Of a DNA stretch of 64,000 nucleotides, positions 771-54,427 are shown piece after piece. The notes beneath the pieces are model-generated. The model made no database searches. It was not told where the DNA came from and saw nothing but the letters and a program-made list of their open reading frames with translations. The translations under genes were made by a program, and so were the position numbers. Every line of letters starts with the position of its first letter. The stretch's first letter is position 1. This stretch comes from Laetmonice hystrix (lineage: Eukaryota), in the NCBI GenBank assembly GCA_965235115.1, contig OZ249444.1:6200001-6264000 (forward strand). The letters run 5' to 3'.

Positions 771-797
771 TGAGAGACTGATGGCGACCTTGGGAAG
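771..797 (+). CDS. Candidate 27-nt exon ERLMATLGR in the PDZ2-PDZ3 interval
   Basis: ttgattgcag|...GGA AG|gtaggt; open only as phase 2 to 2, which fits the PDZ3 acceptor. Confidence 0.4.
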
Positions 798-1647
798 GTA
801 GGTGTACCGGCTCGGAACCCTCCCTAGACTGTTTAGACTATCCATCTGGCCAACCTCCGCCAGCTGTCTATCTTCCGCACTATCCATCTGGCCAGCCTCC
901 ACCGACTGGATGCTATACCACAAGCACAACTTGTGTTTAACACAATGTTTTCCATGCTACATTCGTATCATTAGAAATTACTTTTCACTTACGATAAGCA
1001 AAAGAAAGGTAGGAAAGTTTTGTTGAAACGTTAAACTGTTTGGAAAGTGCATGTTGTACACCAAGTTGTGCTTGTAAGGAGGATGCTGATTGGGTAATCG
1101 GTGCCCTCGTATTGACTGTATTATTAACCAGAACACGTCTTGACCTTGACCTTGTGCGTTCACCTGTCGTGACCCTGACCTACCAGACTGACCACGTATA
1201 CCTTGATTACATATCTGGTATTGTGTCTGATGCTGTCAGTGACTGGCGCCGTTGTCATTGTTTGATATGTATTGTATATGTTCAAATCTTCAGATCAGAA
1301 CAAAGGGTTTACGTGTACGGTCGACAGGTGATTTCAGGTGCAAAATTATACCCCCGATATATACAATGGAAATATGTCGGAAACTAAAATATGAGAAGGG
1401 TCATTATAGTTCAGGGTATAAACTACATCGTCATCACATATACATGTAATCAAAAATAAAAACAAATACAGAAAAAAAAACCCATCAAAGAACACTCGGT
1501 CGTCAGCATTGTTAGACATGATTTTGTTTCGTCTTGAAATTCTGGCTTTTGAAATTTTGAATTTTCGGTCTTAGTTTTTTGTGCCACGCGTGGTTCAATT
1601 CTTCCCCTATAGAATTCTATTTACATTTTGTAGTCAGGTCTAGATTT

Positions 1648-1798
1648 GGGCCCGGTTTTTTGGTTGAGCTTGAGTCGAGGTTTGAGACGAAAACCTCGTC
1701 TCAAGCTCACGGCCCTATGAGTCGACTCACTGGGCCGTGAGCTTGAGACGAGGTTTTCGTCTCAAACTTGACTCAAGCTCAACCAAAAAAACGGGCCC
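1648..1798. mobile_element. Near-perfect palindromic MITE (151 bp)
   Basis: gggcccggttttttggttgagcttgagtc...gactcaagctcaaccaaaaaaacgggccc; the whole element folds back on itself. Confidence 0.8.
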
Positions 1799-1931
1799 TG
1801 GTGTTCCATGGGTTACATAACAACCCCCCCCCCCCTTCTCTCTCTCTCCTCTGTGGTGTTGGGTAGATTTGTGAATGTCTGACTGCATGAAGGCTGTTCA
1901 CTGTTCGCCCAAGATACAGCTCTTGAGTTTT

Positions 1932-2013
1932 GGGGCCCAGTTTTTCTAAAACTTAAGTTTTGCTTGGTACAAGCGTTATGCTTAAACAAGTTAAGTTTTG
2001 AAAAATCGGGCCC
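1932..2013. mobile_element. Short palindromic MITE
   Basis: gggcccagtttttctaaaacttaa...ttaagttttgaaaaatcgggccc. Confidence 0.65.
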
Positions 2014-2921
2014 TGCAGTCTCCTTAGACTAGAGGTGGTGGTTGAGTCACTTGATTTATGACACGACAAACACATGAACATTTTGAGGGTTTCCCAACAA
2101 TTTTGCATCATACAGTGTACATATGTAACTAGTTTTCGCGGTGAATGTTGCATGTAACTGATATACTTCACTGAGACGAGCTATATCACAGAAAGAAAAC
2201 ACATCCTTTTCCTGTGTCCTTATTTAGCTGTGTCGCAAAGTGTTGTCTGCCCGTGCATCGTGGTCATGGTTTTAGTTCTGTCGTCTTTCAACATTGCAGT
2301 TTTTATCAGTCATCAGTTTTAAACCTCCAGCAATAAACACAACAGGACAAAAGGCAACAGGACACTATACTACACCCAGTGAACAAATGTGGGCGTTACA
2401 AGGACATAAAAACAAGAATATGCGAATTTATGTGAACTAATAATGATCATTAATTACATGTGAAGATTACCTGAGTTGGCGACACCATCAACAGGTCCTA
2501 TATCGACCGTAGTCTCACGTGCCAGTCCCCTACGACAGACTCTGATCTTGTACGGAATGTTCGCGAATATTCTTGTTTCAGAAAATAATTCATTCACTCC
2601 ACCCAAAGAACAATGTGTTATTAATTTGCCAGGTATGGTCAGGATGTGTACCGCGTGATTTGAAAATTCTGGTATTCGGTTTGTAGACCTCGACAGGTGA
2701 TAGTGTCACAGTGTTAAACGGGGTGCTGTTTGCCAATTATTGAATTATGCTTCCCCTGAAAGAGGCCGACATCTACATGGATTGCCAAGTTTGCTTCATA
2801 CGTAAAATCTGTACCACCTCTTGACACTACCATCGGTGAAAGGTCTGCCTGAACTGATCATTTATGTTTATACGAAAGCAAACTGCAGTGTCAGTCAGGT
2901 TTTAAACCAGTCTGCCACACA

Positions 2922-3115
2922 ATGCTAAAGTGGGCATTATCGAAAATATGTAGAGCTCTCTCTAGACAAGCAAGCCAAGCTCCCGACGGCAGACAGACTG
3001 TATCACTGGGCCCCAGGCATCGATCACAGTACCCCCTACTTCACCCTCACCCACCTACCCCCTCTCCCGACAAAAAGAATGAAAAAGAGAAAAAACCTCC
3101 TCCTACCCCGCTCAG
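2922..3115 (+). CDS. Candidate alternative first exon MLKWALSKICRALSRQ...KKPPPTPLR
   Basis: ATG-initiated 64 codons ending CTC AG|gtgaac, phase 2. Confidence 0.45.
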
Positions 3116-3512
3116 GTGAACCAGGACACTGGCAGTGATATATATTAACTTGTCATCGAAAGTCGGCAGGTGGCCAACCAGAATCTCAAGATCCAGAGAC
3201 TATCAACAGGCAGTTCGTCATCACAGACGTCTACAGAAGGACCCGTTTAATTACATTAATAACAAACTGTCCTGTACGACAGATTGGCACAGAATAATTC
3301 CACGTGCTTTCTTCTCCAAGTAATCTGCCAGGCTCAGCTTATCCCCCCCCCCCGCTTTGTCAAGCCGAGTAGGGGAAAACGTAACTTCATCCTCAATTTC
3401 CATTAAAATGTAACAATGTTATGATTTGTAATTGATCTTAAAAAAAAGGATTTGATTTGTCCTAAGAGTTCTGGGTGCATGTAGGTCGATGCACAGTGGT
3501 GATTGCCGAGAG

Positions 3513-4050
3513 CAGACCACCCTCCAATCATCAGTGAGTGATTGGTAACAGACGGGTTTATCAAATCAGACCACCCTCCAATCATCAATGAGTGATTGGT
3601 AACAGACGGGTTTATCAAATCTGACCACCTCCAATCATCAGTGAGTGATTGGTAGCAGACGAGTTTATCAAATCAGACCACCCTCCAATCATCAGTGAGT
3701 GATTGGTAACAGACGAGTTTATCAAATCAGACCACCCTCCAATCGTCATGAGTGATTGGTAGCAGACGAGTTTATCAAATCAGGCCACCCTCCAATCATC
3801 AGTGAGTGATTGGTAACAGACGAGTTTATCAAATCAGACCACCCTCCAATCATCAGTGAGTGATTGGTAACAGACGAGTTTATCAAATCAGACCACCCTC
3901 CAATCATCAGTGAGTGATTGGTAACAGACGAGTTTATCAAATCAGACCACCCTCCAATCATCAGTGAGTGATTGGTAACAGACGAGTTTATCAATTCAGA
4001 CCACCCTCCAATCATCAGTGAGTGATTGGTAACAGACGAGTTGATCAAAT
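3513..4050. repeat. 54-bp minisatellite, about 10 copies
   Basis: Unit atcagaccaccctccaatcatcagtgagtgattggtaacagacgagtttatcaa. Confidence 0.95.
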
Positions 4051-5132
4051 CTGGGGTTTGTCCTGATGTGTCGACGTCATCACAATCTTTACCTCCTTCA
4101 TCTTACCGACCAGTCGGCAGACGATAATGACACGGGTGAGCTGGGATTCAGATAACACGGCCCATTAGGTTGGCGTCATGGAATTTGTAGTCGTCATGGG
4201 CAACGGGCAGTGACAGTTGTACCTAGCAACAGGTGCCGGACTATCCTGCGGAAGGTGACCCCATTTTTAAACCTCATTCCCTGACCCCTGTAGATTCTCC
4301 ATGAGATGATGCATGTCTGATGCCAAAATATGAGGTGGGTAATATGGTTATTATTAGTGATTTGGTTTCTTAGATACGAATTTAAGGGGGTCAACTTTAT
4401 TTGGCCTGATGAAAGTAAAATATATTTGGTCTGTTTTTCGATGTATTGCCTATTGGAGTAGCCGTTTGGGGGTTGTTTGGGTTTCACGACGATATTGATT
4501 AATGAGAACCGACGGGACATTGACAACTCCTGGACGGTCGCCGGGAGGTCTGCCTGGATGTGGCCAGGTGTGGGTCAAGGGGTCAAGGGGTCAACTCCTG
4601 ACATGTCACATCCAGCACACGGCCGGGACATACGATCCTCGCTCCCAGCCGTAGCTCTCGTACCGCCATTCACAGCTCCCTGCTGGCCTGGACTGATAGT
4701 CAGGAATGGTCGGTGACACTTGAAAGGGTCAGTAGACTGGGTTAATTTAAGATGAAAGTTAAAAGCTGGAAGATGCTGTGAATGACGCGAGGTATGACAT
4801 AGAGACGTGAGAAGTGTTTTCTCACGCTGCTGTCGTCTGATCAGTTGAGATGAAAGAGGAGGGTTGTTTTATGACGTCATTAACCTCTTCCCAGCTGGGT
4901 GTGGAGTGTGTGTCAGGTTCGAGACCCCCAACAGGTGTTGTAAGGGTCGGGGGCGGGGCTGGTTGGGGCGCAGGACCAGGGTCGGTGTGAAGGACCTGGA
5001 TTCCTTGGTTATGCAGGTCCTTTGTGGTATAAGACAATAAAATGAAGAAAATAAGAATGGATTAGGGTTAAGGTTAGGATTAGGGATTATCAAGAAATAT
5101 TTAAATAATACAACATCACGGAATTCAAGTCC

Positions 5133-5350
5133 CTAGAATGCGGTCCGTGGATAGCATAAACGGATCATCTTCGTTTGCATGCGTTTCTTGTCCGTTTCTC
5201 GTTCGCCAAATGCGTTCCTTGTCAGGCGAGGTCCGTTCAATCCGGAGAAACGCTGAGGGCAACGAGTAGCAACGGAGACGACTTTCACCACCGGATGGTT
5301 AATTTTGACAAAGTTTCTGTCCGTCGCACGTCCGTGTGACAGGGCCATAA
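5133..5350. mobile_element. Probable truncated Harbinger-type MITE end
   Basis: Ends cgtgtgacagggcca-taa, resembling the Harbinger terminus plus TAA; the other end was not found. Confidence 0.35.
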
Positions 5351-9674: not shown

Positions 9675-9706
<32 letters not shown>

Positions 9707-10326: not shown

Positions 10327-10432
10327 ATAACGGCAGTGAGTTGTGTGCATTAACGGCAGTGAGTTGTGTGCATTAACGGCAGTGAGTTGTGTGCATGTAA
10401 GATAACGGCAGTGAGTTGTGTACACAAGGATA
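10327..10432. repeat. 23-bp tandem repeat, about 4 copies
   Basis: aacggcagtgagttgtgtgcatt. Confidence 0.85.
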
Positions 10433-11274
10433 GCCACAGTTAATACAACCAGGATTACAGTCGTACGTGGTCTGGTGGTCAGTGTGGTCATCACCAGACC
10501 CGAGTGTGGATAAAGGATGACCAGCCTTGACCACATCCTATAGGAACGGATGGTGACTGAGAGCAATACCGTGGGAGCAGGGTGAAACTGTACATCATCA
10601 AACTGAAGTGTGGTCGTCGTCCCATGATCAGGCTGACGCTGAGCAGTGGGGTGTGATAAGAACGTAGCTCCCACCATCTTGTACCAGGGGGTCAGTTAGT
10701 TACCCCCACCCCCACGCCCGATTCCACCCCGCCTCTGCCTGCGAGGTTTATGTTTTCCCAGTGGCACCAGCTGGGGATTTCTTTGAACCAGCCGCCCCAT
10801 GATATTGTTGCCATCATCCACGTGTCCCTGTGGAGTATCGTCGCTGGGCTGTGAACCGGCTCCTGGCGCTGGTGTCGGAGTCTCGTGTCGGGACCGTCCG
10901 TGGTCAGCGCAGGCAGTGGCAATCCTAGCACGCTTATTACACACGTCCGTCATCACCATAAATGTCCACCGGCCAAATTGACATCGGTCATTGTTATTAG
11001 TGCCGCCAGCAATGCCATCAAATTTTGATGTGTTTTCGTGGTCTGTGGTTGTTGAAATACCTGCAAATCTGTTATATCTGAGGCAGCCATTCCTTATATG
11101 CAACGAAGCTGAAAATTCCTCAGCACAAAATCTACTTTGAATATGGGTCTAGTGCATTGCATGAGTGCTGTAAAATTTCAAAAGAAAAATTCATTTACAT
11201 GTAGTTGCGCCCATACCAGTGGTGTGTTTGCCGGAGTAAAAGTGACATAGGGAAAAAATTGTACGTAGTTTAAA

Positions 11275-14200
11275 ATGTATGAGGCGAGTGACTTGAGTCG
11301 ACATGCTGGGGGTCAGAATAACAGTTTTTCTGATGCAAATAGCAGCAGTCACGACATACGAAACTGTGGCTACAGTTCAGGGTATGCCCCCAGTGGGATG
11401 AATCGTTACGGGGTAACCTCTGAGGGCGCCGGTGAAGGCAGGATGAGGGCGGGGAGGCCAGGAGAGGGCGGCCCGGGTAGGATGGAGCACCCGGCCGTAT
11501 ACAGCCGGCCCCCGCTGCCACTGCCCCACCAGAGACAGGACCCTCTGCCATATCAGTACCCCAGTCCCCACGGCAAGAACACATACAATGGTAACTACAG
11601 TTACCACGACCAACCCCCAAACGGACCACTCCCGAGCCCTGTCCACTCCGGAGGGTACCCTGGAGGTCGCGGCAGGCCAGACGGTCACATAGACGATAGT
11701 CACAGGTGTAGTAGTCAACCGGCGCCGTCGCCCAGGGCCCAGAGGTCGGACCAGTATCATGGCTCGCCCGGTAAGACCGCTGCCGCCTACCGGCCGACTC
11801 AGCTCCCATACCGCGGGGACGGAGGTCCTCCACCCAGGGTCCCAGTGAGGCCAAGCGAGGAGATGTACAGCCCAGGGATCCCACCCGGCATTCCGAGCCC
11901 GTCTCCCCGACAGTTCCAGTCCCAAGGCGAGCCGCAATATTGGCCACTCACAGGTCGGGCATCCAGTCCACATGGTAGCAATAGCAGACTTTCAGGGCCA
12001 TCTACACCAAGTCCACACGGCAGCATGACCAGGCTCTCCAACCCACCCAGCCCAATGGGTAGTGGTCATAGACTCCCCAGCCCAGCCAATGCCAGCTTGG
12101 CTTACCACCCGTCCAGTCCACACAGGCCTGTTGCTGCCTTAGGAAGTCCACACAGTCCATCAGGACACGGTAACCAGTTCGCCAACGTGTTCAATTCAGT
12201 TTCAGCTGTTCGGAGACCAGCAAGCCCAGCTGGGTCCCAGAACAGTTCTCACAGTAGCCAACACCAAGGACTCACATCTAGTAGCCCAGTGGGTTCACCC
12301 TCACAAAGACTAGTGAACCAACACGTAGAGGAATCCCACGGCCCTTCCATGACACCAGGCCCATGGTACAACCCTCAGAGTGCCCCTGGCCCATACGCCC
12401 TCAGCCAGGGAAGGTCTCCACGAGGGCCCCTACCAGGAGGACAAAGTCCCTCCGAGGGGCTTTACGCGCGAGTCGGTCAATACGAGGGACAATACCGGTT
12501 GAATGCTGACTCCCCGTCTGCCCAGAGCAGATCGCCGAGGTCGCCCAATGGCGTCTACATCCACGAAGGAAATTTCCCGCGGACCCCAAGTCACCCAGAC
12601 TTACGGGAAGGTTCATTTCGTGCTGCTCCCAGTCAGTCGAGTCTGGCTGGCCCTGGGCTCCCTGGGCTCCCTGGGCAACCTGCAAGAAGTGGAAGCCTAT
12701 CTAGTCTCAGCAGGGACCACACGAGCCCGTCTGCTGGTCAGTCGGGCTTTCCTGATGGACCTTACCATCGATTACCCAACTCACGGGATCTTCAGGGCAG
12801 ACAGTTCGACATCTCTTCAAGTCAGTCCAACCTTCGCGATAATCAGTACAGACAACAACCTGCTAGTTACCAAGGCAATAGCAGCGGAGTAACCAACGGG
12901 TCAGGGGCTCCGGAGGGACTCTGTAATGTAAGTCCAGGACAGGTGAAAGATTTGCATAATGCAGGAAACTGTCATCCTAACAGAGCACCAAATTACTCTG
13001 ATGTAAAAGGACAAAAGATTAAAGGTGAGCGTAGTCCCAATGACATGAACTTTAGCAGAGTACCGAGCAATTATAGTCTCGATGAAGGACATTATATTAA
13101 TAGAGCTCTAGGCCACCCCGGTCTCAATGAAGGACAATACAGTAGAGCACCAAGCCATCCTAGTCTCAATGAAGGACATTATGTTAGAGCTCCAAGCCAT
13201 CCTGGTCTCAATGAAGGACATTATAGGAGAGCGCCAAGCCATTCTAGTCTCAGTGAAGGACACTATGATAGAGAATCAAGCCATCCTAATCTCGGCGAAG
13301 GATATTATAGTAGGACACCAAACCATCCTAGTCTAAATGAAGTACAGTATAGTAGAGCACCAAGTAATTCAAATCTCAGTGGAGAACAGTTCAGCAAAGC
13401 ACCAAGTCATCCTAGTCTATACGAAGGACAACATAGTAGGGCACCGAGCCATCTCAGTCCAACTGATCAATTAAATAGAGCGCCAAGCCAACCAAGTTTC
13501 AACAAAGGTCAGATAAGTAGAGCGCCGGGTCATGATAAAAGAACTTTAAGCCAATCTAATGTAACTGACGAACACCTTAACAGAACAGCTAGTTATACAA
13601 CTTTGAATGAAGGACATTCCCAACAGAATATTGAAATTTTTCATGACCTCGGGGGCGGTCCAAATGAGCAGTACGAAGGAGTCACAAATGGTGTCGACAC
13701 TTCTGAGGTCCCACATCGGCCACCCGGAGACGAGAGTGAGCCACTCGGAGATAGAAACTCAGCCACATCTGACGTAGCTGTGGCGTCCAGCGACTTGTAC
13801 AGACCTCAGTCTCGCAACACTCCGGAGGGTGGCGCCAGTGTGTCAGATCCCCAAGGAAGACCCCCTGTCGTCAGATCTAGAGCGGGAAGTCCCTCTGGGC
13901 CACCGCCGCCTCCTCCATCACATCCTCCAGTCACAGTGCCCGTGTTGTCACAGCAACGTCAGGAGACGATCGAGGTGGACGCTCCGCCCGCTGTGCCACC
14001 TCTCCCGTCCGCCTCCTCCTCCTGCCGCTCGGCGCCGCTGCACACTCAGCACAAGCCTCCAGTGCCGCCGCCCTATTCGTATCAGGCCAAGCAGAGACAG
14101 AAGCAGCCGTCGCTGCTGTCGTATCCAACAAGCTCGCAGGTACACTCAGCAGAATCCGTCCCGCCACCGCCGCTGTCTCAGCCGTCGCGGCACGGCACGT

Positions 14201-14288
14201 CGCTCGCACCACGTCAGTCGGTCAGCAGCCATCAACGCGAGCGACCAGCCGCCAGGTACAATCGACACTACTACTACGATACTAACAG
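11275..14288 (+). CDS. Giant candidate alternative first exon, 1004-aa Ser/Pro/Gly/His-rich disordered region
   Basis: aaaATG start, 3-kb uninterrupted ORF with diverged internal protein repeats, donor AAC AG|gtacgt in phase 2. The ORF otherwise runs on to a stop at 14370. Confidence 0.75.
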
Positions 14289-14796
14289 GTACGTAACCAC
14301 AGCAGCGGCGGCATCCAGCCGCTTTCCCAAGCTGCTGACGTTGATATTTCAGGGGTATTTTCAGCAATGAGGGGGAGGGAGGGGGGGAGCCACCCACCTG
14401 AGTTAGGAGCCGAGGATTGAGTGGGTTGATATCGCTGCTGTTGAAGCAGCTGGTAGAGAGAGATGTTGGTCCGGGATCGCTGAGACTGCCTCAGTGTACA
14501 TGGGTTAAAATGTATACCGGCCACACACAGTGCCAGGCGTGGATGGATACACAGTGGGGAGCTAGACCACTTGGTGTGTATTGCCTTAATTAGCCCTGAC
14601 AGATGTGTGTTAATTGTATGCAATTGTTCTAATTGCTACAAATTCAATTTGGATGATCCTGGAGGAATATAGCTGTGTGAATACCGGTAGCGGCAAAGCA
14701 AGATTCGTGGCTCTACTGCTGAAGCTACTCCTGCAGGTGTTGGCCTAGGAAACAGCCGGGTGGTGGATTAAGCTGTTGAATGGCTGTTGCGGCCTG

Positions 14797-15176
14797 ATGC
14801 AGTGTATTGGAGGCTGTGGTTATCGCACGGACCCATCCTTGAGTCCTGTGGCGGGTGTGGGCCCCACCACTGACGGAGACTGGGAGTCTAAGCCCCTCGG
14901 TATACGGACATCCACCAGCGCTGCCGTTAGTAACACCGTCACTGAAGTCGGTGGCACAACCTCATCAGTATCTGATGTCCTCGCGATTGCTGGCCCTGAC
15001 GACCGAGGTGGTGCTGGTGGTGCTGATGGCACCACTGGCGGTGCAAGGGCTCCTGCTCCTTGTGCTGGAGTAGCAGGACCATCGACTGCACCCCTCACCA
15101 GCCAAGGGTTCAACCCCGAACCCTCCTCCTCCTCCTACTCGACCGTCCACGTTGAGACCAGCAACCCCATCCTCAG
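14797..15176 (+). CDS. Candidate alternative first exon MQCIGGCGYRTDPS...ETSNPILR
   Basis: 126 codons ending CTC AG|gtaggt, phase 2. Confidence 0.5.
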
Positions 15177-16072
15177 GTAGGTAGGTGCTCCTCAGCACCT
15201 GTCTCCTGACACCGGTTCACAGGCAAGGTCAAGTCCATTTTAATTAGCTCCGATTTCATAACATCAGCTTCACCTTGCTTAGTGACCGGGATCTAACAGT
15301 GTTTTCCTAAGCTGCATTGCACACAAGTCATGATAAGACAGTTATGTCAGCAAGAACTGAAAGCACCTGGAACTTTGTACATTCGATCACATTATGTATT
15401 AACAGATGTATTCCCCAGATAGGAATGAACGTTGAGGATTTGAAAAGTTCTGTTGTGAATGATCATTGTATTTGACAAGGCTAAATATTACTCCTTGACA
15501 TTGAAAGGTAGCGGTCCATACAGGCAGGGGTGTATATTTGCTGCCAGTGTGACTGGGTGCGAATCTAGAGTGTAGTGATAAAAAACGAACCCACGACTCT
15601 GTGTTGAATCGGATATATTTGGAGATTCCACAAACAGACGCTCAGGTACTGGCGGTATATATGTCAGCAGTATGTGCACAAGGTAACACGGGTAAAAAGT
15701 TTCTGCGGGGTGATAAAGGTGCTCAGTGCATCACGCCTCGACGTCTGGGGATTTTTACATGCATGGCTCTCCGAACTGATCAGTGATTGGAGTTATATCG
15801 AGACTTATCAAAGTAAAATATCAATATTTTGAATCCTAGATTCGATCCTCAGTTTATTGTGATTACCTGAAACCAACGCTGAAACTTGCAGGAACATTGA
15901 TCGTATGAAAACATGTTGTGTCTGCATTTTAATTGCGGGTCGATATAACAGTGTCTAAATTTGAGGTGATAAATTTGGAGTACGTGCAAGCTATGTGGTG
16001 GGTCAGCAGTCTGTTGTGACGTCAAGATTATCAAAAGGGCGAGGTGGTTCTGTCAGACGGTGTCAGTGAGTC

Positions 16073-16920
16073 TGGGAGTGTGGGAGGTGTAACACCTTTT
16101 GTCTGTGTGGGTATGGGAGGGTGGGAGGTGTAACACCTGTAATAAGTGTGGGTATGGGAGTGTGGGAGGTGTAACACCTGTAATTAGTGTGGCTATGGGA
16201 GTGCAGGGAGTGTAACACCTGTAATTAGTGTGGCTATGGGAGTGCAGGAGGTGTAACACCTGTAGTGTGGCTATGGGAATGTAGCAGGTACCTGTAGTCA
16301 GTGTGAGTATGGGAGTGTGGCTGGTGAGTATTGAAGATGTAACACCTGTAATCAGTATGGGTATTGGAGGTGAAACACCTGTAATCAGTGTGGGTATTGG
16401 AGTTGTAACACCTGTAATCAGTGTGGGTATTGGAGATGTAACACCTGTAATCAGTGTGGGTATTGGGGGTGTAACACCTGTAATCAGTGTGGGTATTGGA
16501 GGTGTAACACCTGCAATCAGTGTGGGTATTGGAGGTGTAACACCTGTAATCAGTGTGGGTATTGGAGGTGTAACACTTGTAATCAGTGTGGGTATTGGAG
16601 GGGTAACACCTGTAATCAGTGTGGGTATTGGAGGGGTAACACCTGTAATCAGTGTGGGTATTGGAGGGGTAACACCTGTAATCAGTGTGGGTATTGGAGG
16701 TGTAACACCTGTGATCAGTGTGGGTATTGGAGGTGTAACACCTGTAATCAGTGTGGGTATTGGAGGTGTAACACCTGTAATCAGTGTGGGTATTGGAGGT
16801 GTAACACCTGTAATCAGTGTGGGTATTGGAGGTGTAACACCTGTAATCAGTGTGGGTATTGGAGGTGTAACACCTGTTTTCAATGTGGGTATTGGAGGTG
16901 TAACACCTGTAATCAATGTG
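16073..16920. repeat. 33-bp minisatellite, about 25 copies, degenerate at the left end
   Basis: ggaggtgtaacacctgtaatcagtgtgggtatt. Confidence 0.95.
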
Positions 16921-17526
16921 GGTAAAAAGACTGCGCGTGTATTTGGTGGTGGTTAGGAGATCGGGTGTCGTGTTGTGGACAGACACACGGACGATTCAGG
17001 GACGGCCAGACTATGTGCTAAAGGTGATCGCTTCAGGCCTGAAGGGTAGCCATGGCAACTCATTACTGCCTCAGTTCGCAGCTTTTTAAAGCCATTAGAG
17101 TGACATTGATTTAAAACAGGGAGTATGGAATGTCGACATGATAATAGCACGTGCCTTTCTGTATTTATTGCCATAGTGCCAGGTCTGGAATTTACAATAA
17201 AAAGGGCCAGCTTTACATCGTCAGGTTAGTACCGTAACAAATTGGAGTCGGGTGGAAAATATGGTGGCCGCAAAATTGCATGCAGTGATTTCATAATTAA
17301 AAAGTGTTATTTAGGGGATAAAAATCATGATAAAAAGTAGGAAAAGATATAAAACTGCGAGAGAAACACCTGTTGGGCCCGTTGGGGACAGTCGGTCGGC
17401 CTAGGGGACCAAGGGCACTTAATGACGTGATTTTTCTTTTATATATATATATGTACATGTAGGTGTATATAGTTTAACTCCTCGTAAATGTTTTTACCAG
17501 GGAGCCTGGTGAGCATTAGGTTCTGA

Positions 17527-17822: not shown

Positions 17823-19220
17823 CGCCATCAGTGGAGGGAGGGGTGAGGGTGAGGGTGAGCTTACGCTGGCTCCGGGCCGCATGTCGAGTAACTCTGCCAT
17901 CAGTGGAGGGACCATGGAATGGGGTGAGGGCGAGCTTACACCGGCTCCGAGCCCCATCAGTGGAGGGACCATGGAATGGGGTGAGGGTGAGCTTACACTG
18001 GTTCCGGGCCCCATCAGTGGAGGGACCATGGGATGGGGTGAGGGTGAGCTTACACTGGTTCCGGGCCCCATCAGTGGAGGGACCATGGGATGGGGTGAGG
18101 GTGAGCTTACACTGGCTCTGGGCCCCATGTCGAGTAACTCCGCCATCAGTGGAGGGACCATGGGATGGGGTGAGGGTGAACTTACACTGGCTCCGAGCCC
18201 CATCAGTGGAGGGACCATGGAATGGGGTGAGGGTGAGCTTACACTGGTTCCGGGCCCCATCAGTGGAGGGACCATGGAATGGGGTCAGGGTGAGCTTACA
18301 CTGGTTGCGGGCCCCATCAGTGGAGGGACCATGGGATGGGGTGAGGGTGAGCTTACACTGGTTCCGGGCCCCATCAGTGGAGGGACCATGGAATGGGGTG
18401 AGGGTGAGCTTACACTGGTTGCGGGCCCCATCAGTGGAGGGACCATGGGATGGGGTGAGGGTGAGCTTACACTGGTTGCGGGCCCCATCAGTGGAGGGAC
18501 CATGGAATGGGGTGAGGGTGAGCTTACACTGGTTGCGGGCCCCATCAGTGGAGGGACCATGGGATGGGGTGAGGGTGAGGTTACACTGGCTCCGGGTCCC
18601 ATCAGTGGAGGGACGGGTCCCATCAGTGGAGGGACCATGGAATGGGGTGAGGGTGAGCTTACACTGGTTCCGGGTCCCATCAGTGGAGGGACCATGGAAT
18701 GGGGTGAGGGTGAGCTTACACTGGTTCCGGGCCCCATCAGTGGAGGGACCAAGGGATGGGGTGAGGGTGAGCTTACACTGGTTCCGGGTCCCATCAGTGG
18801 AGGGACCATGGGATGGGTGAGGGTGAGCTTACACTGGTTCCGGGTCCCATCAGTGGAGGGACGGGTCCCAGCAGTGGAGGGACGGGTCCCATCAGTGGAG
18901 GGACGGGTCCCATCAGTGGAGGGACCATGGGATGGGGTGAGGGTGAGCTTACACTGGCTCCGGGTCCCATCAGTGGAGGGACGGGTCCCATCAGTGGAGG
19001 GACGGGTCCCATCAGTGGAGGGACGGGTCCCATCAGTGGAGGGACCATGGGATGGGGTGAGGGTGAGCTTACACTGGCTCCGGGTCCCATCAGTGGAGGG
19101 ACCATGGGATGGGGTGAGGGTGAGCTTACACCGGCTCCGGGTCCCATCAGTGGAGGGACGGGTCCCATCAGTGGAGGGACGGGTCCCATCAGTGGAGGGA
19201 CCATGGGATGGGGTGAGGGT
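17823..19220. repeat. Compound minisatellite (57-bp unit plus 21-bp subunit)
   Basis: ccatcagtggagggaccatgggatggggtgagggtgagcttacactggttccgggcc, with ccatcagtggagggacgggtc sub-repeats in the right half. Confidence 0.95.
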
Positions 19221-20635
19221 AAGCGTGCAATGTGCACAGTTTCTAGACCTGACACAGAGACTCTGTGCCCGCTCATCAATACAGGACCCATTGCCACCAG
19301 GTTCATCAATGCTCCGCTCGTTAACGAGACAATGTTGTGCAATATCGGGCCCTCTCATAGCTTGCCATCCTTGCAGCTGACGCCGGCCCAATAATTACTG
19401 GGACCAAACCTTTTGGCCTTTAATTTCACGGAGCCGTCAGAAGTTAGATTAACTGCGTTGGTTTGAAATGATGAAACAGTCAGTGGGCCCGGTGTCCGAC
19501 CTATTGGCAGGCTGCTGTTATGGATCAGCCGGTGTTTTTCTACCCGATTCCGTAGTAGCCTGAATGTCTACCTGGCCGTGTAGATTTAGGTTTCATACAG
19601 GTAATCACTCTACCTGTACCCATACCTGTATATTCCCAATCCAGGTGATCATGGAGATATAACGAGTTGGATCTGATATCATGGACAGACCTGCCAACCA
19701 CTACGAAAAAATATCGTATATTTGCTATGATTTGGTATTGAAGATACACCAGTATGAAATTTGTGACAACAGGCCTATATTTTACGAAAAATTCATATTT
19801 CTCGGATAATTCTTGAAACATACTTTCTTGTCTGGCCAACCGAGTGCAGTTAGAACAGATATTTCAGATTTTAACGCGACTGTGAATATGTGAAGTTGTA
19901 CTTTAATAATTAAAGTTTATCTATTTTCTTGTTTTTATGCAGAAATATGTTAATACTAATTTTTATAACAAAATATAAATTTTTAAAAAGAGTTTTACTG
20001 TAGGCTGTAGCAAGTTGGCAAGTCTGCATGGGTTGTCGGGTGGGGTGCTCTTGAGTGTTCTTGGGTGATTTCACCTTTTGGAGGGGAGAGTTGAAGGAGA
20101 AGAAATAGCGGAGGATGGCTGCTGGAATCCCATTACTGCGGTTTCACAAGACGGTAATTTATTAGTGTGATTACAGACTGGCTGAAGGCAGTTCGGTTTA
20201 TTTTAAAATGTTAAATGAACCAGACACTAATCTGCAGCGGAGGAAAGGCAGGTGGTCACACAACTAGAACATGAGATGGATAATAGTGGGTTAGCATTGC
20301 TCTCGTCAGAATCAGACCATCTGATGTCTAATCTGTTCGACTGGGTCTTCAGTCTTTGAGGTGGAAGTACATCAGCTTCTATTGGATCGAGACAAAAACC
20401 TGATTGAGTGAGCGTACTGAATTAAAAAGCGCAATATTGGCGTTTGCTGAAGAGAAGGGTTTTTTAATGCCCCATAAGTATATTATGATAGCATGCCTAT
20501 CTAACGGAGTTGGATTCAACACGCAAGATCTCATAGTCAGCACCCTGCCATGTAGATTAATTGTCCCAGACAGGTCTCTGGCACGTACGGTACAAAATTA
20601 TGCATGGTCGCCACGTTTGAAAAAATGGCCTAAAT

Positions 20636-21420
20636 AGGTTTTGGCATGTTTTGGGAGGGTAATAATTGAATACATTAAAAAGGTTTTGGCATGTTTTTGT
20701 GAGGGTAATAATGGAATACATTAAATAGGTTTTGGCATGTTTTTGTGAGGGTAATAATTAAATACATTGAATAGGTTTTGGCATGTTTTTGTGAGGGTAA
20801 TAATTGAATACATTAAATACGTTTTGGCATGTTTTTGTCAGGGTAATAATTGAATACATTAATTACGTTTTGGCATGTTTTTGTAAGGGCAATAATTGAA
20901 TACATTAAATACGTTTTGGCATGTTTTTGGGAGGGTGATAATTGAATACATTAAATACGTTTTGGCATGTTTTTGTGAGGGTAATAATTGAATACATTAA
21001 ATACGTTTTGGCATGTTTTGTGAGGGTGATAATTGAATACATTAAATACGTTTTGGCATGTTTTGTGAGGGTGATAATTGAATACATTAAATACGTTTTG
21101 GCATGTTTTGGGAGGGTAATAATTGAATACATTAAATACGTTTTGGCATGTTTTGGGAGGGTAATAATTGAATACATTAAATACGTTTTGGCATGTTTTG
21201 GGAGGGTAATAATTGAATACATTAAATACGTTTTGTCATGTTTTTGTGAGTTTTGGCATGTTTTGGGAGGGTAATAATTGAATACATTAAATATGTTTTA
21301 GCATGTTTTTGTGAGTTTTGGCATGTTTTGGGAGGGTAATAATTGAATACATTAAATACGTTTTAGCATGTTTTTGTGAGTTTTGGCATGTTTTGGGAGG
21401 GTAATAATTGTATACATTAA
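20636..21420. repeat. 45-46-bp AT-rich minisatellite, about 16 copies
   Basis: ttttggcatgttttgggagggtaataattgaatacattaaatacg. Confidence 0.95.
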
Positions 21421-22251
21421 AGGAAAGGTGAGACAGGTGATTGCATTAACTTCCTGGTTAGGGTCGAGTTCCTGGAAACACTCTGTAGGTCTTGATGGAG
21501 GCGACAGTTCCAAGGATTCCTGAAGGGCTTCACACCTTTTTTGAGGACTGACATTTAAGCGGGGGGGGGGGGGTCTCCCCACCACTCCAAACAAGATGGA
21601 CCGAGAGGAAACCATGAGAACCGTACGGCACGGCCCGTTGTGATTCTCATTATAAAGGCTGGAATCACACGTACCGAGAGGTGCGGGTTGAGAGTGTTTG
21701 GCACTGAATGACTGGCACTGAAGCCCGTGACCGGTATTATGTCAAACTGTCTGATGACCAGACGAATGGGCCCCGTATCCTCACAATGAGCGCTCGGTGG
21801 CCAGGTTAAGGTGGTCAGGACTGCCCGTCTTCATCCACTCGTACAGTGTGATCAGATCACAACACCACCTTGTACACTCACAGTAAGCAGACTCTGCCAC
21901 AACAGAATCCTAGCTGTTCGTTCTACCCTTGTCATCTTCACCAGCGAACACCATTGATTTATGTGCCAGAGTCAATATGAAATTGGTCGTTAATTTGAGA
22001 TGAGATGAGATGAGCTCGATATTATCTTTTTAATCCATGCGGCAGATTTAGTGCCGGATAAGGTGAAGGGCGAAGGGCCGGTCATCATGTTAGGGGATAA
22101 TGTTATGCAGCCAAGTGAAGGGCAGTCTGTCGCTATCCATCACACCAGAACCATGTAGTCGGTGTTTCATTGATAAGCAGGGTGAGTGATTAATACAAGC
22201 CCGAAACCATGGCACAGAAAGACCCAGCAATATAGACACCACCCAGTTCTA

Positions 22252-29900: not shown

Positions 29901-31425
29901 GGATTATGGATTAGCCCCACAGTGTCCCCGGTAATTGAAGGCCAAGGCCTGCAGATCCCCCAGATCTCTACCGGCCAAGACTCTGCTTGGATGGCTGGCC
30001 CTGATCTTTGCGCACTCCATCGGAAAATTACCAAGCGTTTTTAGACGGTAGAAAAGAAATTTGCACTTGGTTTGACTTTGGAAAGTTGTTGTCGTTGCTG
30101 TTCTCACAGGAGATGACAGAGACTTCTGGCAGTTGTAGCTTTATCTCAGAGGTAATTTGTGGCAATCTGTGAGTTCTTTGTGTCAATGGTTAAGGGAGGG
30201 GAAGGGTCAGACGGCTGGCTTTCCAACAGTATGTTCCCAGAGGCTCGCAGTTACCAGCTGGGGATGGACTGTAACCTGCATTCAGTCAGAATAATATAGT
30301 TAGCAGTTTCCTCACCAGAGGGCAGTAAAGGTCCGTTTTGTCGAACGAGTCAGTCCTGGTGTTGCAGACAGTATTATTCTCAATACTTTCCAAAGTAATT
30401 GTGGTATTCTGGCTCGCCGATTGTGGCCAAGGCAACCTGGAATTCTTAATCTGATGAAGGAAGAATAAAACTAAACGTAAAGAAAGTTTCCCAGTGCAAG
30501 AACGACTTCGAACGAAACCGCCAATCACCCAGGCCCCCGGCCCCTGGTAATCCGCAACCAGCAGCAGGCGGGGATTAGCAGGGTCGGATTAACGTAAGGC
30601 CTTGGGGATTGTTGTTACGGCCGGTGTGAGAATGATCCCGGGAGAATGGTCCGCCGTCAGAGGACCGGAGGTTAATGGGAAGGACGTTCCCAAGGTCAAG
30701 GGCCGCCGACAGCTCTAACTCTGTCAAGACCGGGTGAAGTTTTCAATAATTGTAAAAAATGTACATTATTTATGACAGTGGTCAGCGGACATAAGTCATC
30801 TAGGAGCTTACCAAAGTAATCGTTTTGAAATCCATTAATCATCATTAAGGGCCATATCCTTGATTTTGCTTGCAGAGATATGGCCCAGTCTTGGGTGGGA
30901 ATTGGAAAGTACCACAGGCCTTGGGTTTATTTCCAAGATTTCATTATATTGTCAGCGAAACTTGTTAATCCTGAGAGCTTCCCTCTCCAATCAGAAGTTC
31001 ATGGCATGTGATGACATTTTCGCGGGAGTGACCTTAATTTTGACGGTGACACAATGTTTTTTGTCAAACCGGGCTCCCAATTGCAGTTGAAATGGATATT
31101 TGCTCATTAATGTAGGTTTTCCCTTTTAAATCAGTCTGCGGGCTTGGCGTGTCTTTGTCAAAACATGACACATTTCATCCAGTGTTCAAATTGTCTTTGT
31201 GATGGAATTCAATATTCATCTAACGTAAACTGTGATAATTTTTCGGCAAAGCTTTCACAGCACAGTTGGGCAAATTGGGCAAGCCACATTTAGGTGCAGA
31301 ACCTGGCCAATATTTTGTATTTACCAGACAAGATATGGGATGATTTGCCACACTTAGTGCCACGGTTAACCACACAGAAGAGTTACTGATCCAGAAGGGT
31401 GACGCGCTGGTTAGTGGCCCACTAA

Positions 31426-31664
31426 ATGTTGTGTTTGCCCCCTCCCGTCCTCCCAGCGGCCCGGGTCAGCGGCCCACATGATGAAGCCAGTGGAGTCAGG
31501 AAGAGACGTTGTAAAGTAATCCCCTGTCTACGTCAGTGCAAGACCTGGCCGCCCTGGAGCATCCCAACCCGGAGCAGGAGCCGCCGCCCTATCCCCGTCC
31601 TACAGTATACCTACGTCTGTGACCCACTTTGTGAGCAGAGCTCCTCCAGTAAGTTGGGGTGTAG
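31426..31664 (+). CDS. Candidate exon MLCLPPP...KLGCR (or internal exon from acceptor 31457; alternative donor 31648)
   Basis: Open frame ending TGT AG|gtacgt (phase 2), strong pyrimidine tract before 31457, second donor CCA|gtaagt. Structure is ambiguous. Confidence 0.35.
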
Positions 31665-32731
31665 GTACGTACATACGTACTCCATGGAGTAACCTCGCAG
31701 ATTCATGCCACAACCGAGCTGGTGTTGGAGCACTGTAGCTGGAAAAGGACGACTGAGGTTTGGATTCTGAAGGCGGGAGGTTCTACTGTAATCTTTCACG
31801 TTTGTACGGTAACTGCTGAAGTCAACACTGGGGAGTCTCAAGTGTGTTTAAGTCCCAGGACAGAGAGAGAGAGAGACAGATCAAGTATCTGATATACAGA
31901 ACTGCTAAATTGGAGTGATCATCTGCAGTTTACTTCCACCCTTGTCATTCAGTTTGATTAATACAGAACATATTGTAACTCGCCGCCTCACCGTCCAACT
32001 GAAGAAAAACGGACCAAATATTTCCTTATACATGTAGTCTGATTAATCAGAAGCTGGGTGCCGTTTTTTTCTGACTGCCAGAGTGTCAGGGATGTGAACG
32101 TTGTGTGAAGGATCTGTCCTGCTCAGACAGCACTGTTGACGTGGTACGGTAGGCCTACCATTAGTATCGATGTCTGGAACTTCCAGGTCAGCTGCGTGGG
32201 AGTGGTAATCTGAGTGAGGAGGCAACAGACACACAGACAGACCGGCTGAACGCCCGGGGCCTCTCGACATAAACACCTCTTGACCGAACGCCGTCTTCAC
32301 CCCTAGCAACCAAGACGAGACTCCCTGACAACGACCATGTCGTACCTTTCTGGCACGGTACGGCAGCTTGATTGATTGGGACTGGACCAATCAGCAACGA
32401 TAAACGAGTTTTTGTTTGGACGCAGAGACAGAGCCAGCCGTCAGTCTTCAACTGTTGTAGATATTATGTATAGGGTCTACACGGAGGCTGTGGAGGCTAA
32501 CACGGTGCAGTTTGGTCCACTTCTGATTCCGACCACGGAAACCACAGCTATTTCCTCCCCGGCAAACAGGAGGGGGTTGTTAAGGGTGTAACCCCGGAGA
32601 TGATTCGTTTTTATGTCAGGAAATTGTACAATATCACGTCAGTCTGGGGGTAGATGCATTTGGTAACGGTGGTTTCCAGCCAAGGAGGAAGACAAATTGG
32701 AACCAGTTGAATTAGGTTTGCAGTGACACGC

Positions 32732-32903
32732 TGACGTCATCTGACGTCACACGTATCAGCGGTTGATTTCCAGTCGCTTGTCATCAGACATCATTGCCGG
32801 ATCATTGGGGACCGCCAACTGAGACAGTTTGACATGTTTACGAGGTGCTCTTCATCAACCACGGACTCCGTCTGGGTCAATCAGACTTGCCGCTAGAGGG
32901 CGC
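32732..32903. promoter_or_regulatory. Two CRE palindromes plus a CTCF-like motif upstream of candidate exon 33841
   Basis: TGACGTCA at 32732 and 32742; CCGCTAGAGGGCGC at 32890. Motif match only. Confidence 0.45.
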
Positions 32904-33840
32904 TAAATCTGGGACGTAACGTCACGCGGACGCTACGTCAATGGCGTCCTCATTGTTGGCTATCCATCTTTCCTAGAAGCTGCACGCCCACCATCCAGCC
33001 ATCAGCTAACTAGTCTGAAACGAACCTGCTTGCTCTGCTCCCGGCTAGGTTTATTTTTAAGGTGCCAAAAACATCCATTACCGACAACTGATGATAAAGT
33101 CAACCCTTGGACGCGTCGAGGGAAATCACGTCCTGAACTCGCGCCACCGAGCAACTCCACGGGGCGGTCAGATTTTGGAAAAGACCAGATGATTCCTCAT
33201 CAGCAGATGGACTGGCCAACTAGACTTTATCGTCCAATAAATCAGAGACGTATGGCGACAGGGCCAAGAAGGATTCCTAATGAATTGATGTCTGTCGCGG
33301 GAGAAAAAAAAAGCTTGATTTAATGCGGTTCTCTATGCTGAGGTGCATCTGATAATGCTATAATGAAGGTTGTGATTCCGTCGGCGTAGTCTTGGAATGA
33401 AGGGATGTGACGGTACATGTTGCGAGGCAACAGCCACATAAGTCTCAAATAAATCTCTGACCAAAAATATAACGAAGGAAAATAGAAGACAGCTGTAGTA
33501 GCTTGAGTGCAAATGATATCATCACAATAGTGATTGGCCCGTGGTTATTCTATATCCTGGAATTCTATGGACCAACGATTCGTACGATTCGGAGGAGGAC
33601 GAATCATTGGGAGCAGTGAGGAGGACAGACAGCGACGTCTTGTCGTCTTGAGTCTGTCTTTAGATCCTGTCAGTAATTATCTCTGGCGGGTGGTTTATCT
33701 CATTAACTAATTAATCAGCCAGTACTAATTCTGTGGACGCTCTTGGTGGCCGCCAGCAGTTTTGGAGCGCGGATTGCGAAGTGTAGTTAGTTCGTCCCAG
33801 CCACAGTGAGGCACAGTCACCCAGGACCAAGGACACGACC

Positions 33841-33956
33841 ATGATGAAGGGCAAGGCGGGTCAGGATGCCCAGGTGGGTTCAATGGGCACCTGGCTCCGT
33901 ATCAAATACCTGAGGAACCTAAGGAAGTCCTCCAGCAAGCAGGATGTCAACACCAG
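33841..33956 (+). CDS. Candidate alternative exon MMKGKAGQDAQVGSMGTWLRIKYLRNLRKSSSKQDVNTR
   Basis: accATG, donor ACC AG|gtaagg in phase 2, giving ...NTR-DPRK similar to the DLG junction TR-EPRK. The frame is also open back to an acceptor at 33800. Confidence 0.65.
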
Positions 33957-35104
33957 GTAAGGGTTATACACTGGAGTAGGCCTCAAAACTCAACCCTGAA
34001 CGAATATCACCCATTCCAGTTGAGGGTCTAGGTACCCCCAACAAACTGAACCCTCTTGTGTCCAGTACTTAGACAATCCCTCCCTTCAGCCTGCATAGAA
34101 CTAGAATAAGAAGTCTCAGAAATCTTGCTGACAATCCTTGTTTTCCAACGTGTAGAGTGGCACGCACGCACGAGGAACACTCAGAGGTCAATGACAAAGG
34201 TTCATAGAATGTACCCGGCTATATGAAGGTCATGTTTGAAACCAAGATAAAGATGAAATAGCAGAGTCCCATTAACAACACTCTTTCACCATGTGTGTAT
34301 TTGCATGATGGAAAAATTGGTAAAAGTTACCATTACCATCACTCGGGGGAGGGGAGGTCAGAAAGAAAGGGGAGATTGGCTCAGAGGAAGAAAACAGAGG
34401 CTCGTACTCAGCAGTTCAGGCGAGAGAAAATATAGACCGGGGTCGGTATTGCGACATGACGAATTGGAAGAGAGTGAGAGACTAGCGACAGACAGAGAGC
34501 ATAGAGGAATATTCCTAAGAGAGACACAGTCAGACTGAACGGAATAGCAATAAACATAAAATCTCCTCTCATAATTAGCAAGGGTAATTGGCTTGTCATT
34601 ATCTCCTGATTGTCCGGTCGGACTTAAGTTGTTGATTGCCACTGGCTATTAGCGGGGGGCTGCTAACTGTTGACATATAAATACATGTACATGTAGACTA
34701 AATGTCAAGTACTTTACCACCTGTCATGCTATCTGTGTACGCCAGCAGGGGGCACTCACTGTCCGACTGTGATTGCAGCGGGAGCCTCACCGGCTCGGGG
34801 ATCTTCATCGTGTTCAACAACTAGTACAAGCCTTCCAAATCAACCGAGCACTGATAGAAGACTAAACTAATCATTGACAGCTAAATCAACCTAGCACTGG
34901 TAGAAGACTTAACTAATCATTGACAGCTAAATCAACCTAGCACTTATAGAAGACTAAACTAATCAGTGCCTGCTAAAGATGACGACTGTTGGCAGTCGAC
35001 TTTAGAAACTCAAGCATGTATGAAAAAGAGGAGAAGTATATAGGCCTCTTCTTTGACGTTTCTTTCCTTTTGGATAGTACTTCTGCATTCCGGTATTGTG
35101 AAGG

Positions 35105-35131
35105 TGACGTCATCGTTACGTCATGACGTCA
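35105..35131. promoter_or_regulatory. Triple CRE/ATF cluster
   Basis: TGACGTCA-tcg-TTACGTCA-TGACGTCA within 27 bp. Motif match only. Confidence 0.45.
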
Positions 35132-35799
35132 CACCCAGAAGTTTGAATCGTCACTTCTGATGACTTAATGTGTCCTGGTCAGCCACTAGGTTGTTACTGA
35201 CCCAGTTATTGCCAGTCGGCAGGACGGAGGCTGATTTTGTTATCAGATTACCACGGTATCTGTTTGAATAGAAGAGGTAATAGGGAGCCATGGTATCCGC
35301 CAGGACCTATTACTGTATGCAACAAATTCCGAGCGTCTACTGTTCATTGCTGGTGCCTCTCGAATGTTTGGCTGTCAATATAATAATGAGGTCCACCATA
35401 ATATTTGTCAATGTCAATGGTACAGTTTATATTAATGATAACTTGATATTAGTCTGGAATTAATGTCATTTAAAGATAGTTTTGAGCATTTTTCATCTAG
35501 GATGTTTCTGTGTGAATAATGTAGGAAATCCTGGGTTAAAAATGAGAGCTCTCACGAGCTGCCTGTCTGGCTCGCTTGTTTATTTCTGGGTCCTTTGTTC
35601 AGAAAATCCCACCTAAGGCTGAACATGTACGCGACTTTCTAATACAAAAACTATGTGGGATCTAGTAGCAGAGAATGAACGTGTTCCTGTCATACGGTTC
35701 CCGCTGGGAAATCTATCCAACTTAACTCGCTCCGTATTGTAATCCACACTGAGGGATTTAGTGGGAGAGACCGGCTGGGACGGCTTTGGAGGCAGTGGT

Positions 35800-36260
35800 G
35801 GGGGTTAGGTGGGTAATGATGGGGGTTGGGTGGGTGATGATGGGGATTGGGAAGGTGGTGATGGGGTTGGGTGGGTGGTGATGGGGGTTAGGTGGGTAAT
35901 GATGGGGGTTGGGAAGGTGGTGATGGGGATTGGGTGGGTGGTGATGGGGGTTGGGTAGGTGGTGATGGGGTTGGGTGGGTGGTGATGGGGTGGGTAATGA
36001 TGGGGGTTGGGTGGTTGGTGATGGGGGTTGGGTGGTTGGTGATGGGGTGGGTGATGATTGGGGTTGGGTGGTTAGTGATGGGGTGGGTAATGATGGGGGT
36101 TGGGTGGTTGGTGATGGGGGTTGGGTGGTTGGTGATGGGGTGGGTGATGATTGGGGTTGGGTGGTTAGTGATGGGGTGGGTAATGATGGGGGTTGGGTGG
36201 TTGGTGATGGGGGTTGGGTGGTTAGTGATGGGGTGGGTGATGATTGGGGTTGGGTGGATA
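35800..36260. repeat. G-rich degenerate minisatellite (21-bp and higher-order units), G-quadruplex-prone
   Basis: gatgggggttgggtggttggt variants. Confidence 0.9.
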
Positions 36261-37008
36261 GTGATTTGGTGATACTTGTAGAGAGACCAGGGGACATGAG
36301 CCTGATGACGACATTCACCACATTCCTAACGAGCGTAGCCACCCCGTGGTTGTCATAGCGACCTCCTTCCATGGCGCGAGGTTGTTGGTCGAGGAGAGCC
36401 GGGGTGGATTGGATCATGTCATGTAGGACAGGCTCATCATGTCGGCCCACGTTATCTACGATTGTAATAGACCTGTCATGTACAGATCAGGCCGATCGCG
36501 GGCCTAGTAATGCTCTATACAGCCCCGCCCTGTTGGTGTCCGACAGGGTCGGGTGTGCAGGCCACAAAACGGTACATTCCATTAGAAGCCAGCGCCGGGG
36601 TCGGAAGGTCACACGTAGGATTAAATTGCTGTCAACCCACAACTTGACCCCCATAAATACACCCCTTGTACGTATACAAGACACCAACTATCCATACCCA
36701 GGCACCCAAACCAAGGTGTATGGTACTCGAGCCCACTTGGATAAACCTGGTTGGGTTTACCATAGTCTGTCAAATAGTCATCTTTGTTTTCAGGTTGCTA
36801 AGAGAGGCTCGCAGCTATTGGAGTTGGTGACGATACATCGGAACCTCGTCTTGACATCATTTATAGCATAGTTTCACCTCAGAAATAGGTCAAGGCAATT
36901 GTTGGATAAACGCCAATGGTATTGTCCCTTTTGACCCACATTGATGATCCGAGATGCTATATATAAGACATTGTCCAATAGTGAGAGTTTGCATTGTTGT
37001 ACTTGCAG

Positions 37009-37165
37009 AGACCCACGGAAGATTCTGCTAAAGAAAGGCACCACCGGGCTGGGCTTCAACATCGTGGGCGGGGAGGATGGGGAGGGAATCTTCATCTCGT
37101 TCATCCTGGCTGGAGGACCCGCCGACTTGAGCGGGGAACTCCACCGCGGCGACCAGCTCCTGTCG
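37009..37165 (+). CDS. dlg1: dlg exon, PDZ3 N-half (R)[52 protein letters not shown]
   Basis: Acceptor ttgcag|A, donor TCG|gtaagt, 157 nt, phase 2 to 0, PDZ GLGF motif. Confidence 0.96.
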
Positions 37166-37195
37166 GTAAGTCTGGCCTCGTTACGCTCCTGTTTG

Positions 37196-54413: not shown

Positions 54414-54427
54414 GTACGAATCGCCAG

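Follow-up and report, generated by a model that had tools for sequence, protein, structure and literature searches.

Within a 64,000-nucleotide (nt) stretch of the genome of the polychaete Laetmonice hystrix (NCBI GenBank assembly GCA_965235115.1, contig OZ249444.1, positions 6,200,001 to 6,264,000 of the forward strand; G000:C10:6200001-6264000 of a 627-Mb genome), hereafter the window, we find that positions 11275-14288 are a genuine coding exon that starts at an ATG of its own, ends at a conserved phase-2 donor and lies on the coding strand of a Dlg gene, inside what is most likely a long phase-2 intron of that gene. An earlier note on this DNA had read the interval between 771 and 37009 as a battery of at least six alternative N-terminal exons, with open reading frames (ORFs) ending at 797, 3115, 14288, 15176, 31664 and 33956, that would all be spliced to the third PDZ domain (PDZ3). 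Taken as a whole, the evidence laid out below makes it probable that five of these ORFs are products of chance and that one is a real exon, and what remains of the battery is accordingly, within the Dlg locus, a single orphan coding exon that is conserved and 3 kb long.

A conserved 3-kb coding exon with its own start codon

The frame of 11275-14288 (+ strand) is open for 1006 codons and is the only one in the interval to lie far beyond chance (P ~3e-18 at the local stop frequency). It encodes 1004 amino acids, begins at an ATG with an A at position -3 and a stop two codons upstream, and ends at the phase-2 donor CAG|GTACGT. The start codon is the exon's own, there being no space upstream in which an in-frame acceptor would fit; this holds for 11275-14288 only. 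The genome contains a single copy of the ORF.

When 1.84 billion representative proteins were searched exhaustively by HMMER with the long ORF, one true homolog was returned, P0001 (E 1e-166), which is a 1157-residue ORF call on a 444-kb contig (443,710 bp; ENA ERZ26222911). The two sequences share 42% identity over a colinear stretch that begins at residue 1 (MYEASDLS here, MYENKDLS in P0001) and runs to ..AARYNRHYYYDTNR, and the similarity ends at ..RHYYYDTNR|YV, where the RYV is nothing but the donor AG|GTACGT read through in both. The read-through tail past the donor, which is 27 codons long here and about 90 in P0001, is unconserved, and this argues against an unspliced gene, though not against a spliced one. 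Indeed, a start codon, frame and donor that are conserved next to a read-through tail that is not are the signature of a spliced first coding exon.

The remaining 20 representative matches were rejected as true homologs since they cover a 14-residue repeat of the protein alone, and of the ten that were scanned in Pfam, some have unrelated domains (RhoGAP, Sec6, phage tail) and the others none; the spurious RhoGAP, Sec6 and phage matches are due to this repeat, which lies at 13053-13453. A search of the ESM Atlas with the long ORF gave nothing above 0.77, and the ORFs called within 10 kb of P0001 have no Pfam matches. Judged from these collections, the exon is lineage-restricted.

The encoded protein is rich in serine (16%), proline (14%) and glycine (10%) and has no Pfam domain, and this low-complexity protein is probably disordered. 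Its repeat (13053..13453, + strand), identified both by a tandem repeat call and by a motif count, is a 42-bp (14-residue) tandem unit of the form NEGxYSRAPSHPxL in about 9.5-10 copies, with more copies in P0001. A single PPPY motif is found in the conserved C-terminal stretch of the protein.

Variation within the sequenced individual is in keeping with a coding function. The one heterozygous indel inside the long ORF measures 9 nt, as compared with indels of 5, 13, 1, 2, 1 and 1 nt in its flanks, and 11 of the 25 heterozygous single-nucleotide polymorphisms in the ORF are synonymous against an expectation of 24-28% (binomial P 0.04-0.06). This amounts to mild purifying selection on the long ORF, which is what one would expect of a region of low complexity. 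A search of sequencing runs with the long exon gave three runs, all from one sample, and contigs from these span 10568-14386 across both exon borders without joints; since the borders are crossed unbroken, the three runs represent genomic DNA, and they served here only as the source of the heterozygous variants just given.

The host gene and its intron

The host is a DLG-subfamily MAGUK gene, its three PDZ domains preceding the SH3, HOOK and guanylate-kinase-like (GK) domains in sequence along a single strand. According to a genome-wide Pfam search for PDZ, the exons of PDZ1 and PDZ2 (C10:6193890-6197975) precede the window by 2-6 kb; the PDZ3, SH3, HOOK and GK exons are found inside it and beyond. 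The PDZ3-SH3-GK core that the earlier note had recognized from the letters alone is thus correctly assigned.

The first PDZ3 exon, whose acceptor would be shared by all proposed leaders, occupies 37009..37167 on the + strand (Pfam PDZ positions 2-53, E 1.3e-9; the genome-wide search places PDZ3 at 37022-37171). Its acceptor reads ttgtacttgcag|A and its donor TCG|gtaagt at 37167, and it opens A GAC CCA CGG AAG ATT CTG, the first base being the third base of a split codon, which bears out the phase in which any N-terminal exon spliced to 37009 had been said to end. At the protein level this exon is 94% identical to the PDZ3 exon of L011 / L012, where L011 (L011:1-16518) is a 16.5-kb Dlg contig of another species (ENA ERZ25070786 ctg124962l). 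The intron directly before [ED]PRK is of phase 2 here, and since the genomic ORFs of many animals are interrupted at this very place, its position is an ancient one.

Downstream, the second PDZ3 exon (PDZ3b, 52821..52922, + strand) was found by tblastn with P0121 and P0083 and by translation, through homology to L011, Lottia and other PDZ3 fragments. Blastn to L011 and translation further locate the SH3 exon at 54751..54938 (+ strand) and other core exons near 54305-54415, 55768-55865 and 62781-62900 (+ strand), such that helix, SH3 and HOOK exons span 54305-55865 and the first GK exon lies at 62781-62900. Pfam Guanylate_kin matches are found at 62800-62895 and just past the window end, the GK domain continuing beyond the window, and the Dlg exons of the locus match those of L011 exon by exon.

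Upstream of the intron, the second PDZ2 exon ends CCT G|gtgagt, i.e. in phase 1, and as PDZ3 needs phase 2, an intervening unit of length 3k+1 is required. A 100-nt unit at L009:8763-8862 (G000:C10:6198763-6198862, + strand), 733 nt downstream of the second PDZ2 exon and 1.1 kb upstream of the window, has an acceptor ttgttgcag| and a donor AAC|gtaagt and converts phase 1 to 2. Joined to PDZ3 it reads V-LNEYLHEQVSPAQTPYRQPSPKATPDEADGAA-T|DPRKILL, with the tail ..TPYRQPSPKATPDEADGAA-T|DPRKILL or, in shorter form, ..YRQPSPKATPDEADGAA-T|DPRK, which we take to resemble the RYSP-type linker of other DLGs. On the strength of its phase, its splice signals and this likeness, the unit is likely the canonical exon linking PDZ2 to PDZ3, and window positions 1-37008 would then be most of one 38.1-kb phase-2 intron that runs from window position -1137 to the PDZ3 acceptor. 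Since this likely upstream exon ends in AC and gives T-DPRKILL, an R at the junction is not required. The Pfam family PDZ_assoc (PF10600) has no match anywhere in the genome. A strict splice-site filter for phase 1-to-2 exons was also tried and was discarded as an exon finder at this locus, as it missed the likely linker (pyrimidine tract score 0.53).

The same phase requirement could in principle be served from within the long ORF, if its last 358 nt (13931-14288) were used as an internal exon that replaces or follows the linker and gives full-length Dlg an alternative PDZ2-PDZ3 linker of 119 residues. There is a pyrimidine-rich CAG acceptor at 13930 in the ORF frame, the unit goes from phase 1 to 2 exactly as the PDZ2-to-PDZ3 connection needs, and the C-terminal part of the ORF is among its better conserved stretches. 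The pyrimidine tract is however simply made of poly-proline codons, the residues at the acceptor fall in a gap of the P0001 alignment, and 880 further conserved codons and a conserved upstream ATG are left unexplained, for which reasons we hold such a use to be highly improbable.

Phase-compatible sites in the intron

All six sites of the proposed battery do read AG|GT, with an open frame that leaves AG for the A at 37009 and gives R-DPRKILL, and their lengths from the first ATG (5, 64, 1004, 126, 79 and 38 residues) agree with the range of 6 to 1004 residues originally given. Sites of this kind are however common. The + strand of 1-37008 has 201 AGGT sites, 46 of them preceded in the required phase by an in-frame ATG and 37 of these 46 giving at least 5 residues. 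Compared with shuffles that keep the local composition, and with the 1004-residue ORF and the minisatellite ORFs left out of the counts, we observe 28 ORFs of at least 5 residues (shuffled 26.4 ± 5.1), 12 of at least 20 (11.1 ± 3.4), five of at least 38 (4.2 ± 2.2), three of at least 60 (1.2 ± 1.1) and one of at least 100 (0.2 ± 0.4), and the two wrong phases give counts equal to those of the required phase. The number of leaders, which had been thought notable, is what shuffles and wrong phases give as well. The five short candidates are the longest members of an ordinary crop, plus one of 5 residues, and are most likely not exons.

Candidate 1 (771..797, + strand; 27 nt, MATLG-R, 5 residues) has the donor AAG|GTAGGT and is at chance level, as are the single-copy candidates 2 (2922..3115, + strand; 64-residue ATG ORF, weak donor CAG|GTGAAC), 5 (31426..31664, + strand; 79-residue ATG ORF, donor TAG|GTACGT) and 6 (33841..33956, + strand; 38-residue ATG ORF, donor CAG|GTAAGG). 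Candidate 4 (14797..15176, + strand) is an ATG ORF of 126 residues (MQCIGGCGYR...) with the donor CAG|GTAGGT. None of the five has a Pfam match, and the 15176 ORF has no homolog at E <= 1 in a search of 5.8 billion proteins, a collection to which the ORFs around P0001 also belong. The same ORF has two in-frame heterozygous indels, of 12 nt and of 3 nt (CCT in a CCT run), which are the sole, and weak, hint of coding among the five.

In L011 none of the six leaders was matched, candidates 2, 5 and 6 included, but with 7.3 kb upstream of PDZ3 and an exon identity of 76% this contig is too diverged and too short for a strong test. An origin of the leaders in repeats had also been considered. Regions 2800-3200, 31300-31800 and 33700-34050 are single copy in the genome, so that the three short candidates checked are not repeats, and with the long ORF this makes four single-copy regions without Pfam domains; it is other ORFs of the intron that are minisatellites.

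A true battery, in which six or more alternative first exons with promoters of their own are all spliced to PDZ3, can draw on the correct phase, AG|GT and ATG of all six, on the single-copy nature of three of them, on a conserved ATG-started leader that abuts the PDZ3 exon in other animals (see below) and on the use of several transcription start sites by Dlg loci, as described in PMC3492131. Against this stand counts that equal random expectation and the wrong phases, the lack of Pfam matches, the lack of conservation where examined and the choice of the six, after the fact, from 46 equivalent sites. We find this explanation very improbable, although the part of it that concerns 11275-14288 stands, in the sense that this is a real exon bearing a start codon and a conserved donor; the other five candidates do not share in this. 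The six-leader battery is for the most part a product of scanning a long intron for phase-compatible AG|GT, and as such a caution for the reading of introns by eye.

Some of the short candidates have additional features. The first, 771-797, also fits a phase 2-to-2 cassette with acceptor ttgattgcag| and donor AAG|gtaggt, reading AAT-ERLMATLG-R-DPRK, and placed between linker and PDZ3 such a cassette would bring back the R found before EPRK in other DLGs. Candidate 5 also fits as a 208-nt phase 1-to-2 internal exon (31457-31664), so that these units can be cast as internal exons no less readily than as leaders. The product of the 15176 ORF begins MQCIGGCGYR and so has two cysteines near its N-terminus, reminiscent of the palmitoylated leaders of alpha-type DLG. 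In the frame that leads into the PDZ3 exon, an ATG at 36944 provides an unspliced, seventh possible leader (36944-37008).

The proposed junction with PDZ3

Where the conserved donor at 14288 leads is a separate matter, and on sequence grounds we put the chance that it is joined to the PDZ3 acceptor at 37009 at about even. In this proposal transcription would begin upstream of 11275 at a promoter within the intron, the exon would be spliced from 14288 to 37009, and the resulting Dlg isoform would bear the long leader where L27-PDZ1-PDZ2 otherwise stand, ahead of a PDZ3-SH3-HOOK-GK core. Leader and core together would come to about 1450 residues, going by a rough tally of the core exons. The predicted junction sequence is ...GATACTAACAG|AGACCCACGG, with a split R codon, so that ..YYYDTNR would be followed by DPR. 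The junction is favoured because the phase of the donor equals that of the host intron, for which an unrelated gene would have a one-in-three chance, and because the exon lies on the Dlg strand and its conservation runs right up to the donor.

The long ORF may instead be the first exon of a nested gene on the same strand, in which case 14288 would be spliced to a small, poorly conserved exon of that gene somewhere in 14289-37008 and never to PDZ3, the other five candidates again being due to chance. Several observations suit such a gene, and all but the first of them also weigh against the interpretation preferred here. The ORF has a conserved start codon of its own and no known domain; at 3 kb, the first coding exon is uncommonly long for an alternative leader and closer to what is typical of a separate, independent gene; no protein in two large collections fuses the long ORF to PDZ-SH3-GK; and there was no RNA run among the matches of the run search with the long exon. 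To these points should be added two that concern the rest of the interpretation, namely that the linker exon, on which the statement of a single intron depends, is without a Pfam match, and that, with species this far diverged, a lack of conservation speaks only weakly against the short leaders. On the other hand, a nested gene would match the phase of the host intron only by the one-in-three chance just given, and conservation reaches the final codon ahead of the donor, which would be expected of a junction that matters. No conserved downstream ORF was found that could serve as its next exon, the nearest, 14749-15176, being without a homolog, and same-strand nested genes with multiple exons are in general rarer than internal alternative first exons. 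We therefore think a nested gene rather unlikely, if the most serious of the alternatives considered.

Splicing of the long exon to PDZ3, to return to the preferred proposal, was also approached by other searches. The 28-mer that spans the 14288-37009 junction is absent from the JGI metagenome contigs and, at up to 3 mismatches, from the genome, which is uninformative on splicing; its absence from the genome means that there is no retrocopy. The ratio of observed to expected CpG and the GC content do not single out the flank of the long exon and are uninformative on the promoter. When the open frame around PDZ3 was used in a search for transcript-derived fragments, the matches fetched were genomic read-throughs in other animals, and none of them came from this species.

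Taking these elements together, we tentatively suggest that a lineage-specific internal promoter gives rise to a Dlg isoform with a repeat-bearing, PPPY-tailed leader of 1004 residues, which would constitute a recently evolved MAGUK N-terminus that arose within an ancient intron and has been retained in the genomes of at least two annelids.

Comparison with other N-termini and with nested genes

Isoforms that begin at PDZ3 are not foreign to this gene family. Vertebrate DLG2/PSD-93 and DLG3/SAP102 have alternative 5' exons and short isoforms that start just before PDZ3 and retain PDZ3-SH3-GK; a literature search for such PDZ3-first DLG isoforms retrieved no source. The leaders of vertebrate DLGs are short, at most some tens of residues, and none is known to be kilobase-scale or repeat-containing. 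The vertebrate leaders have no homology to the long exon.

A sign of such a form is seen in 13 database ORFs of other animals (alignment A1: P0029, P0030, P0035, P0036, P0038, P0040, P0042, P0044, P0047, P0062, P0063, P0064 and P0109), in which MLSPTDSxELMYYLNCLY is found directly before REPRK. The conservation starts at the M, the sequence before it being unconserved, and is lost again after the donor of the exon. From this pattern the segment looks like the leader of a short isoform made by a 5' extension of the PDZ3 exon. It shares with the long exon the intron position before [ED]PRK, but is 18 residues long and an unspliced extension of the PDZ3 exon itself. The window's own frame upstream of PDZ3, with its ATG at 36944, is not similar to it.

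With a conserved ORF that starts from an ATG of its own within a host intron, the locus resembles those of same-strand nested genes in long introns. It differs from these in that the ORF is closed by a conserved donor, of the same phase as the host intron, rather than by a stop codon, and in that no terminal exon of its own was found.

The fruit fly provides a described parallel for the use of start sites. According to PMC3492131, Drosophila dlg1 makes its DlgA and DlgS97 products by means of several transcription start sites together with alternative splicing, and thus places different N-termini on a shared PDZ-SH3-GK body much as is proposed here. The N-termini described there, with or without L27, precede PDZ1 and keep all three PDZ domains, whereas the leader proposed here would enter before PDZ3 and drop PDZ1-2. 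Unlike the Drosophila N-termini, the present leader is furthermore a low-complexity sequence of 1004 residues with no homolog outside one relative. A PDZ3-first isoform is in other words of a known kind, while a kilobase-scale, repeat-bearing orphan leader would be a novel form of it.

Minisatellites and other features of the locus

The intron contains a number of minisatellites, at 3513-4051 (54-bp unit), 16066-16924 (41/33-bp units), 17897-19224 (57-bp unit plus a 21-bp sub-unit), 20631-21421 (46-bp unit) and 35795-36265 (21/36-bp units). Another one, at 37198-38399, starts 31 nt after the donor of the first PDZ3 exon and consists of 36.5 copies of a 33-bp unit with a 94% match, each unit containing the donor-like motif GGAGGTAAGCTACC. 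Several of the minisatellites give rise to long ORFs on both strands that are not genes (e.g. 17881-19380, 499 residues), and the long ORFs at 16-19.4 kb, 35.8-36.3 kb and 37.2-38.4 kb are minisatellites. In L011, from another annelid-like genome, the Dlg gene is compact and covers the distance from PDZ3 to GK in about 7 kb, as compared with about 27 kb here; its intron before PDZ3 contains, on the opposite strand, an ORF of the long interspersed nuclear element type (Exo_endo_phos).

Implications for Dlg scaffolds

Should 11275-14288 turn out to belong to a nested gene, the locus would hold an ordinary orphan gene. If on the other hand the exon is spliced to PDZ3 as proposed, the animal would possess a minimal PDZ-SH3-GK module behind a very long, repeat-bearing arm of low complexity. 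In that case the exon would illustrate clearly how a highly conserved scaffold gene can acquire a new N-terminal region within one of its old introns, and it would offer a handle on how Dlg scaffolds gain lineage-specific partners.

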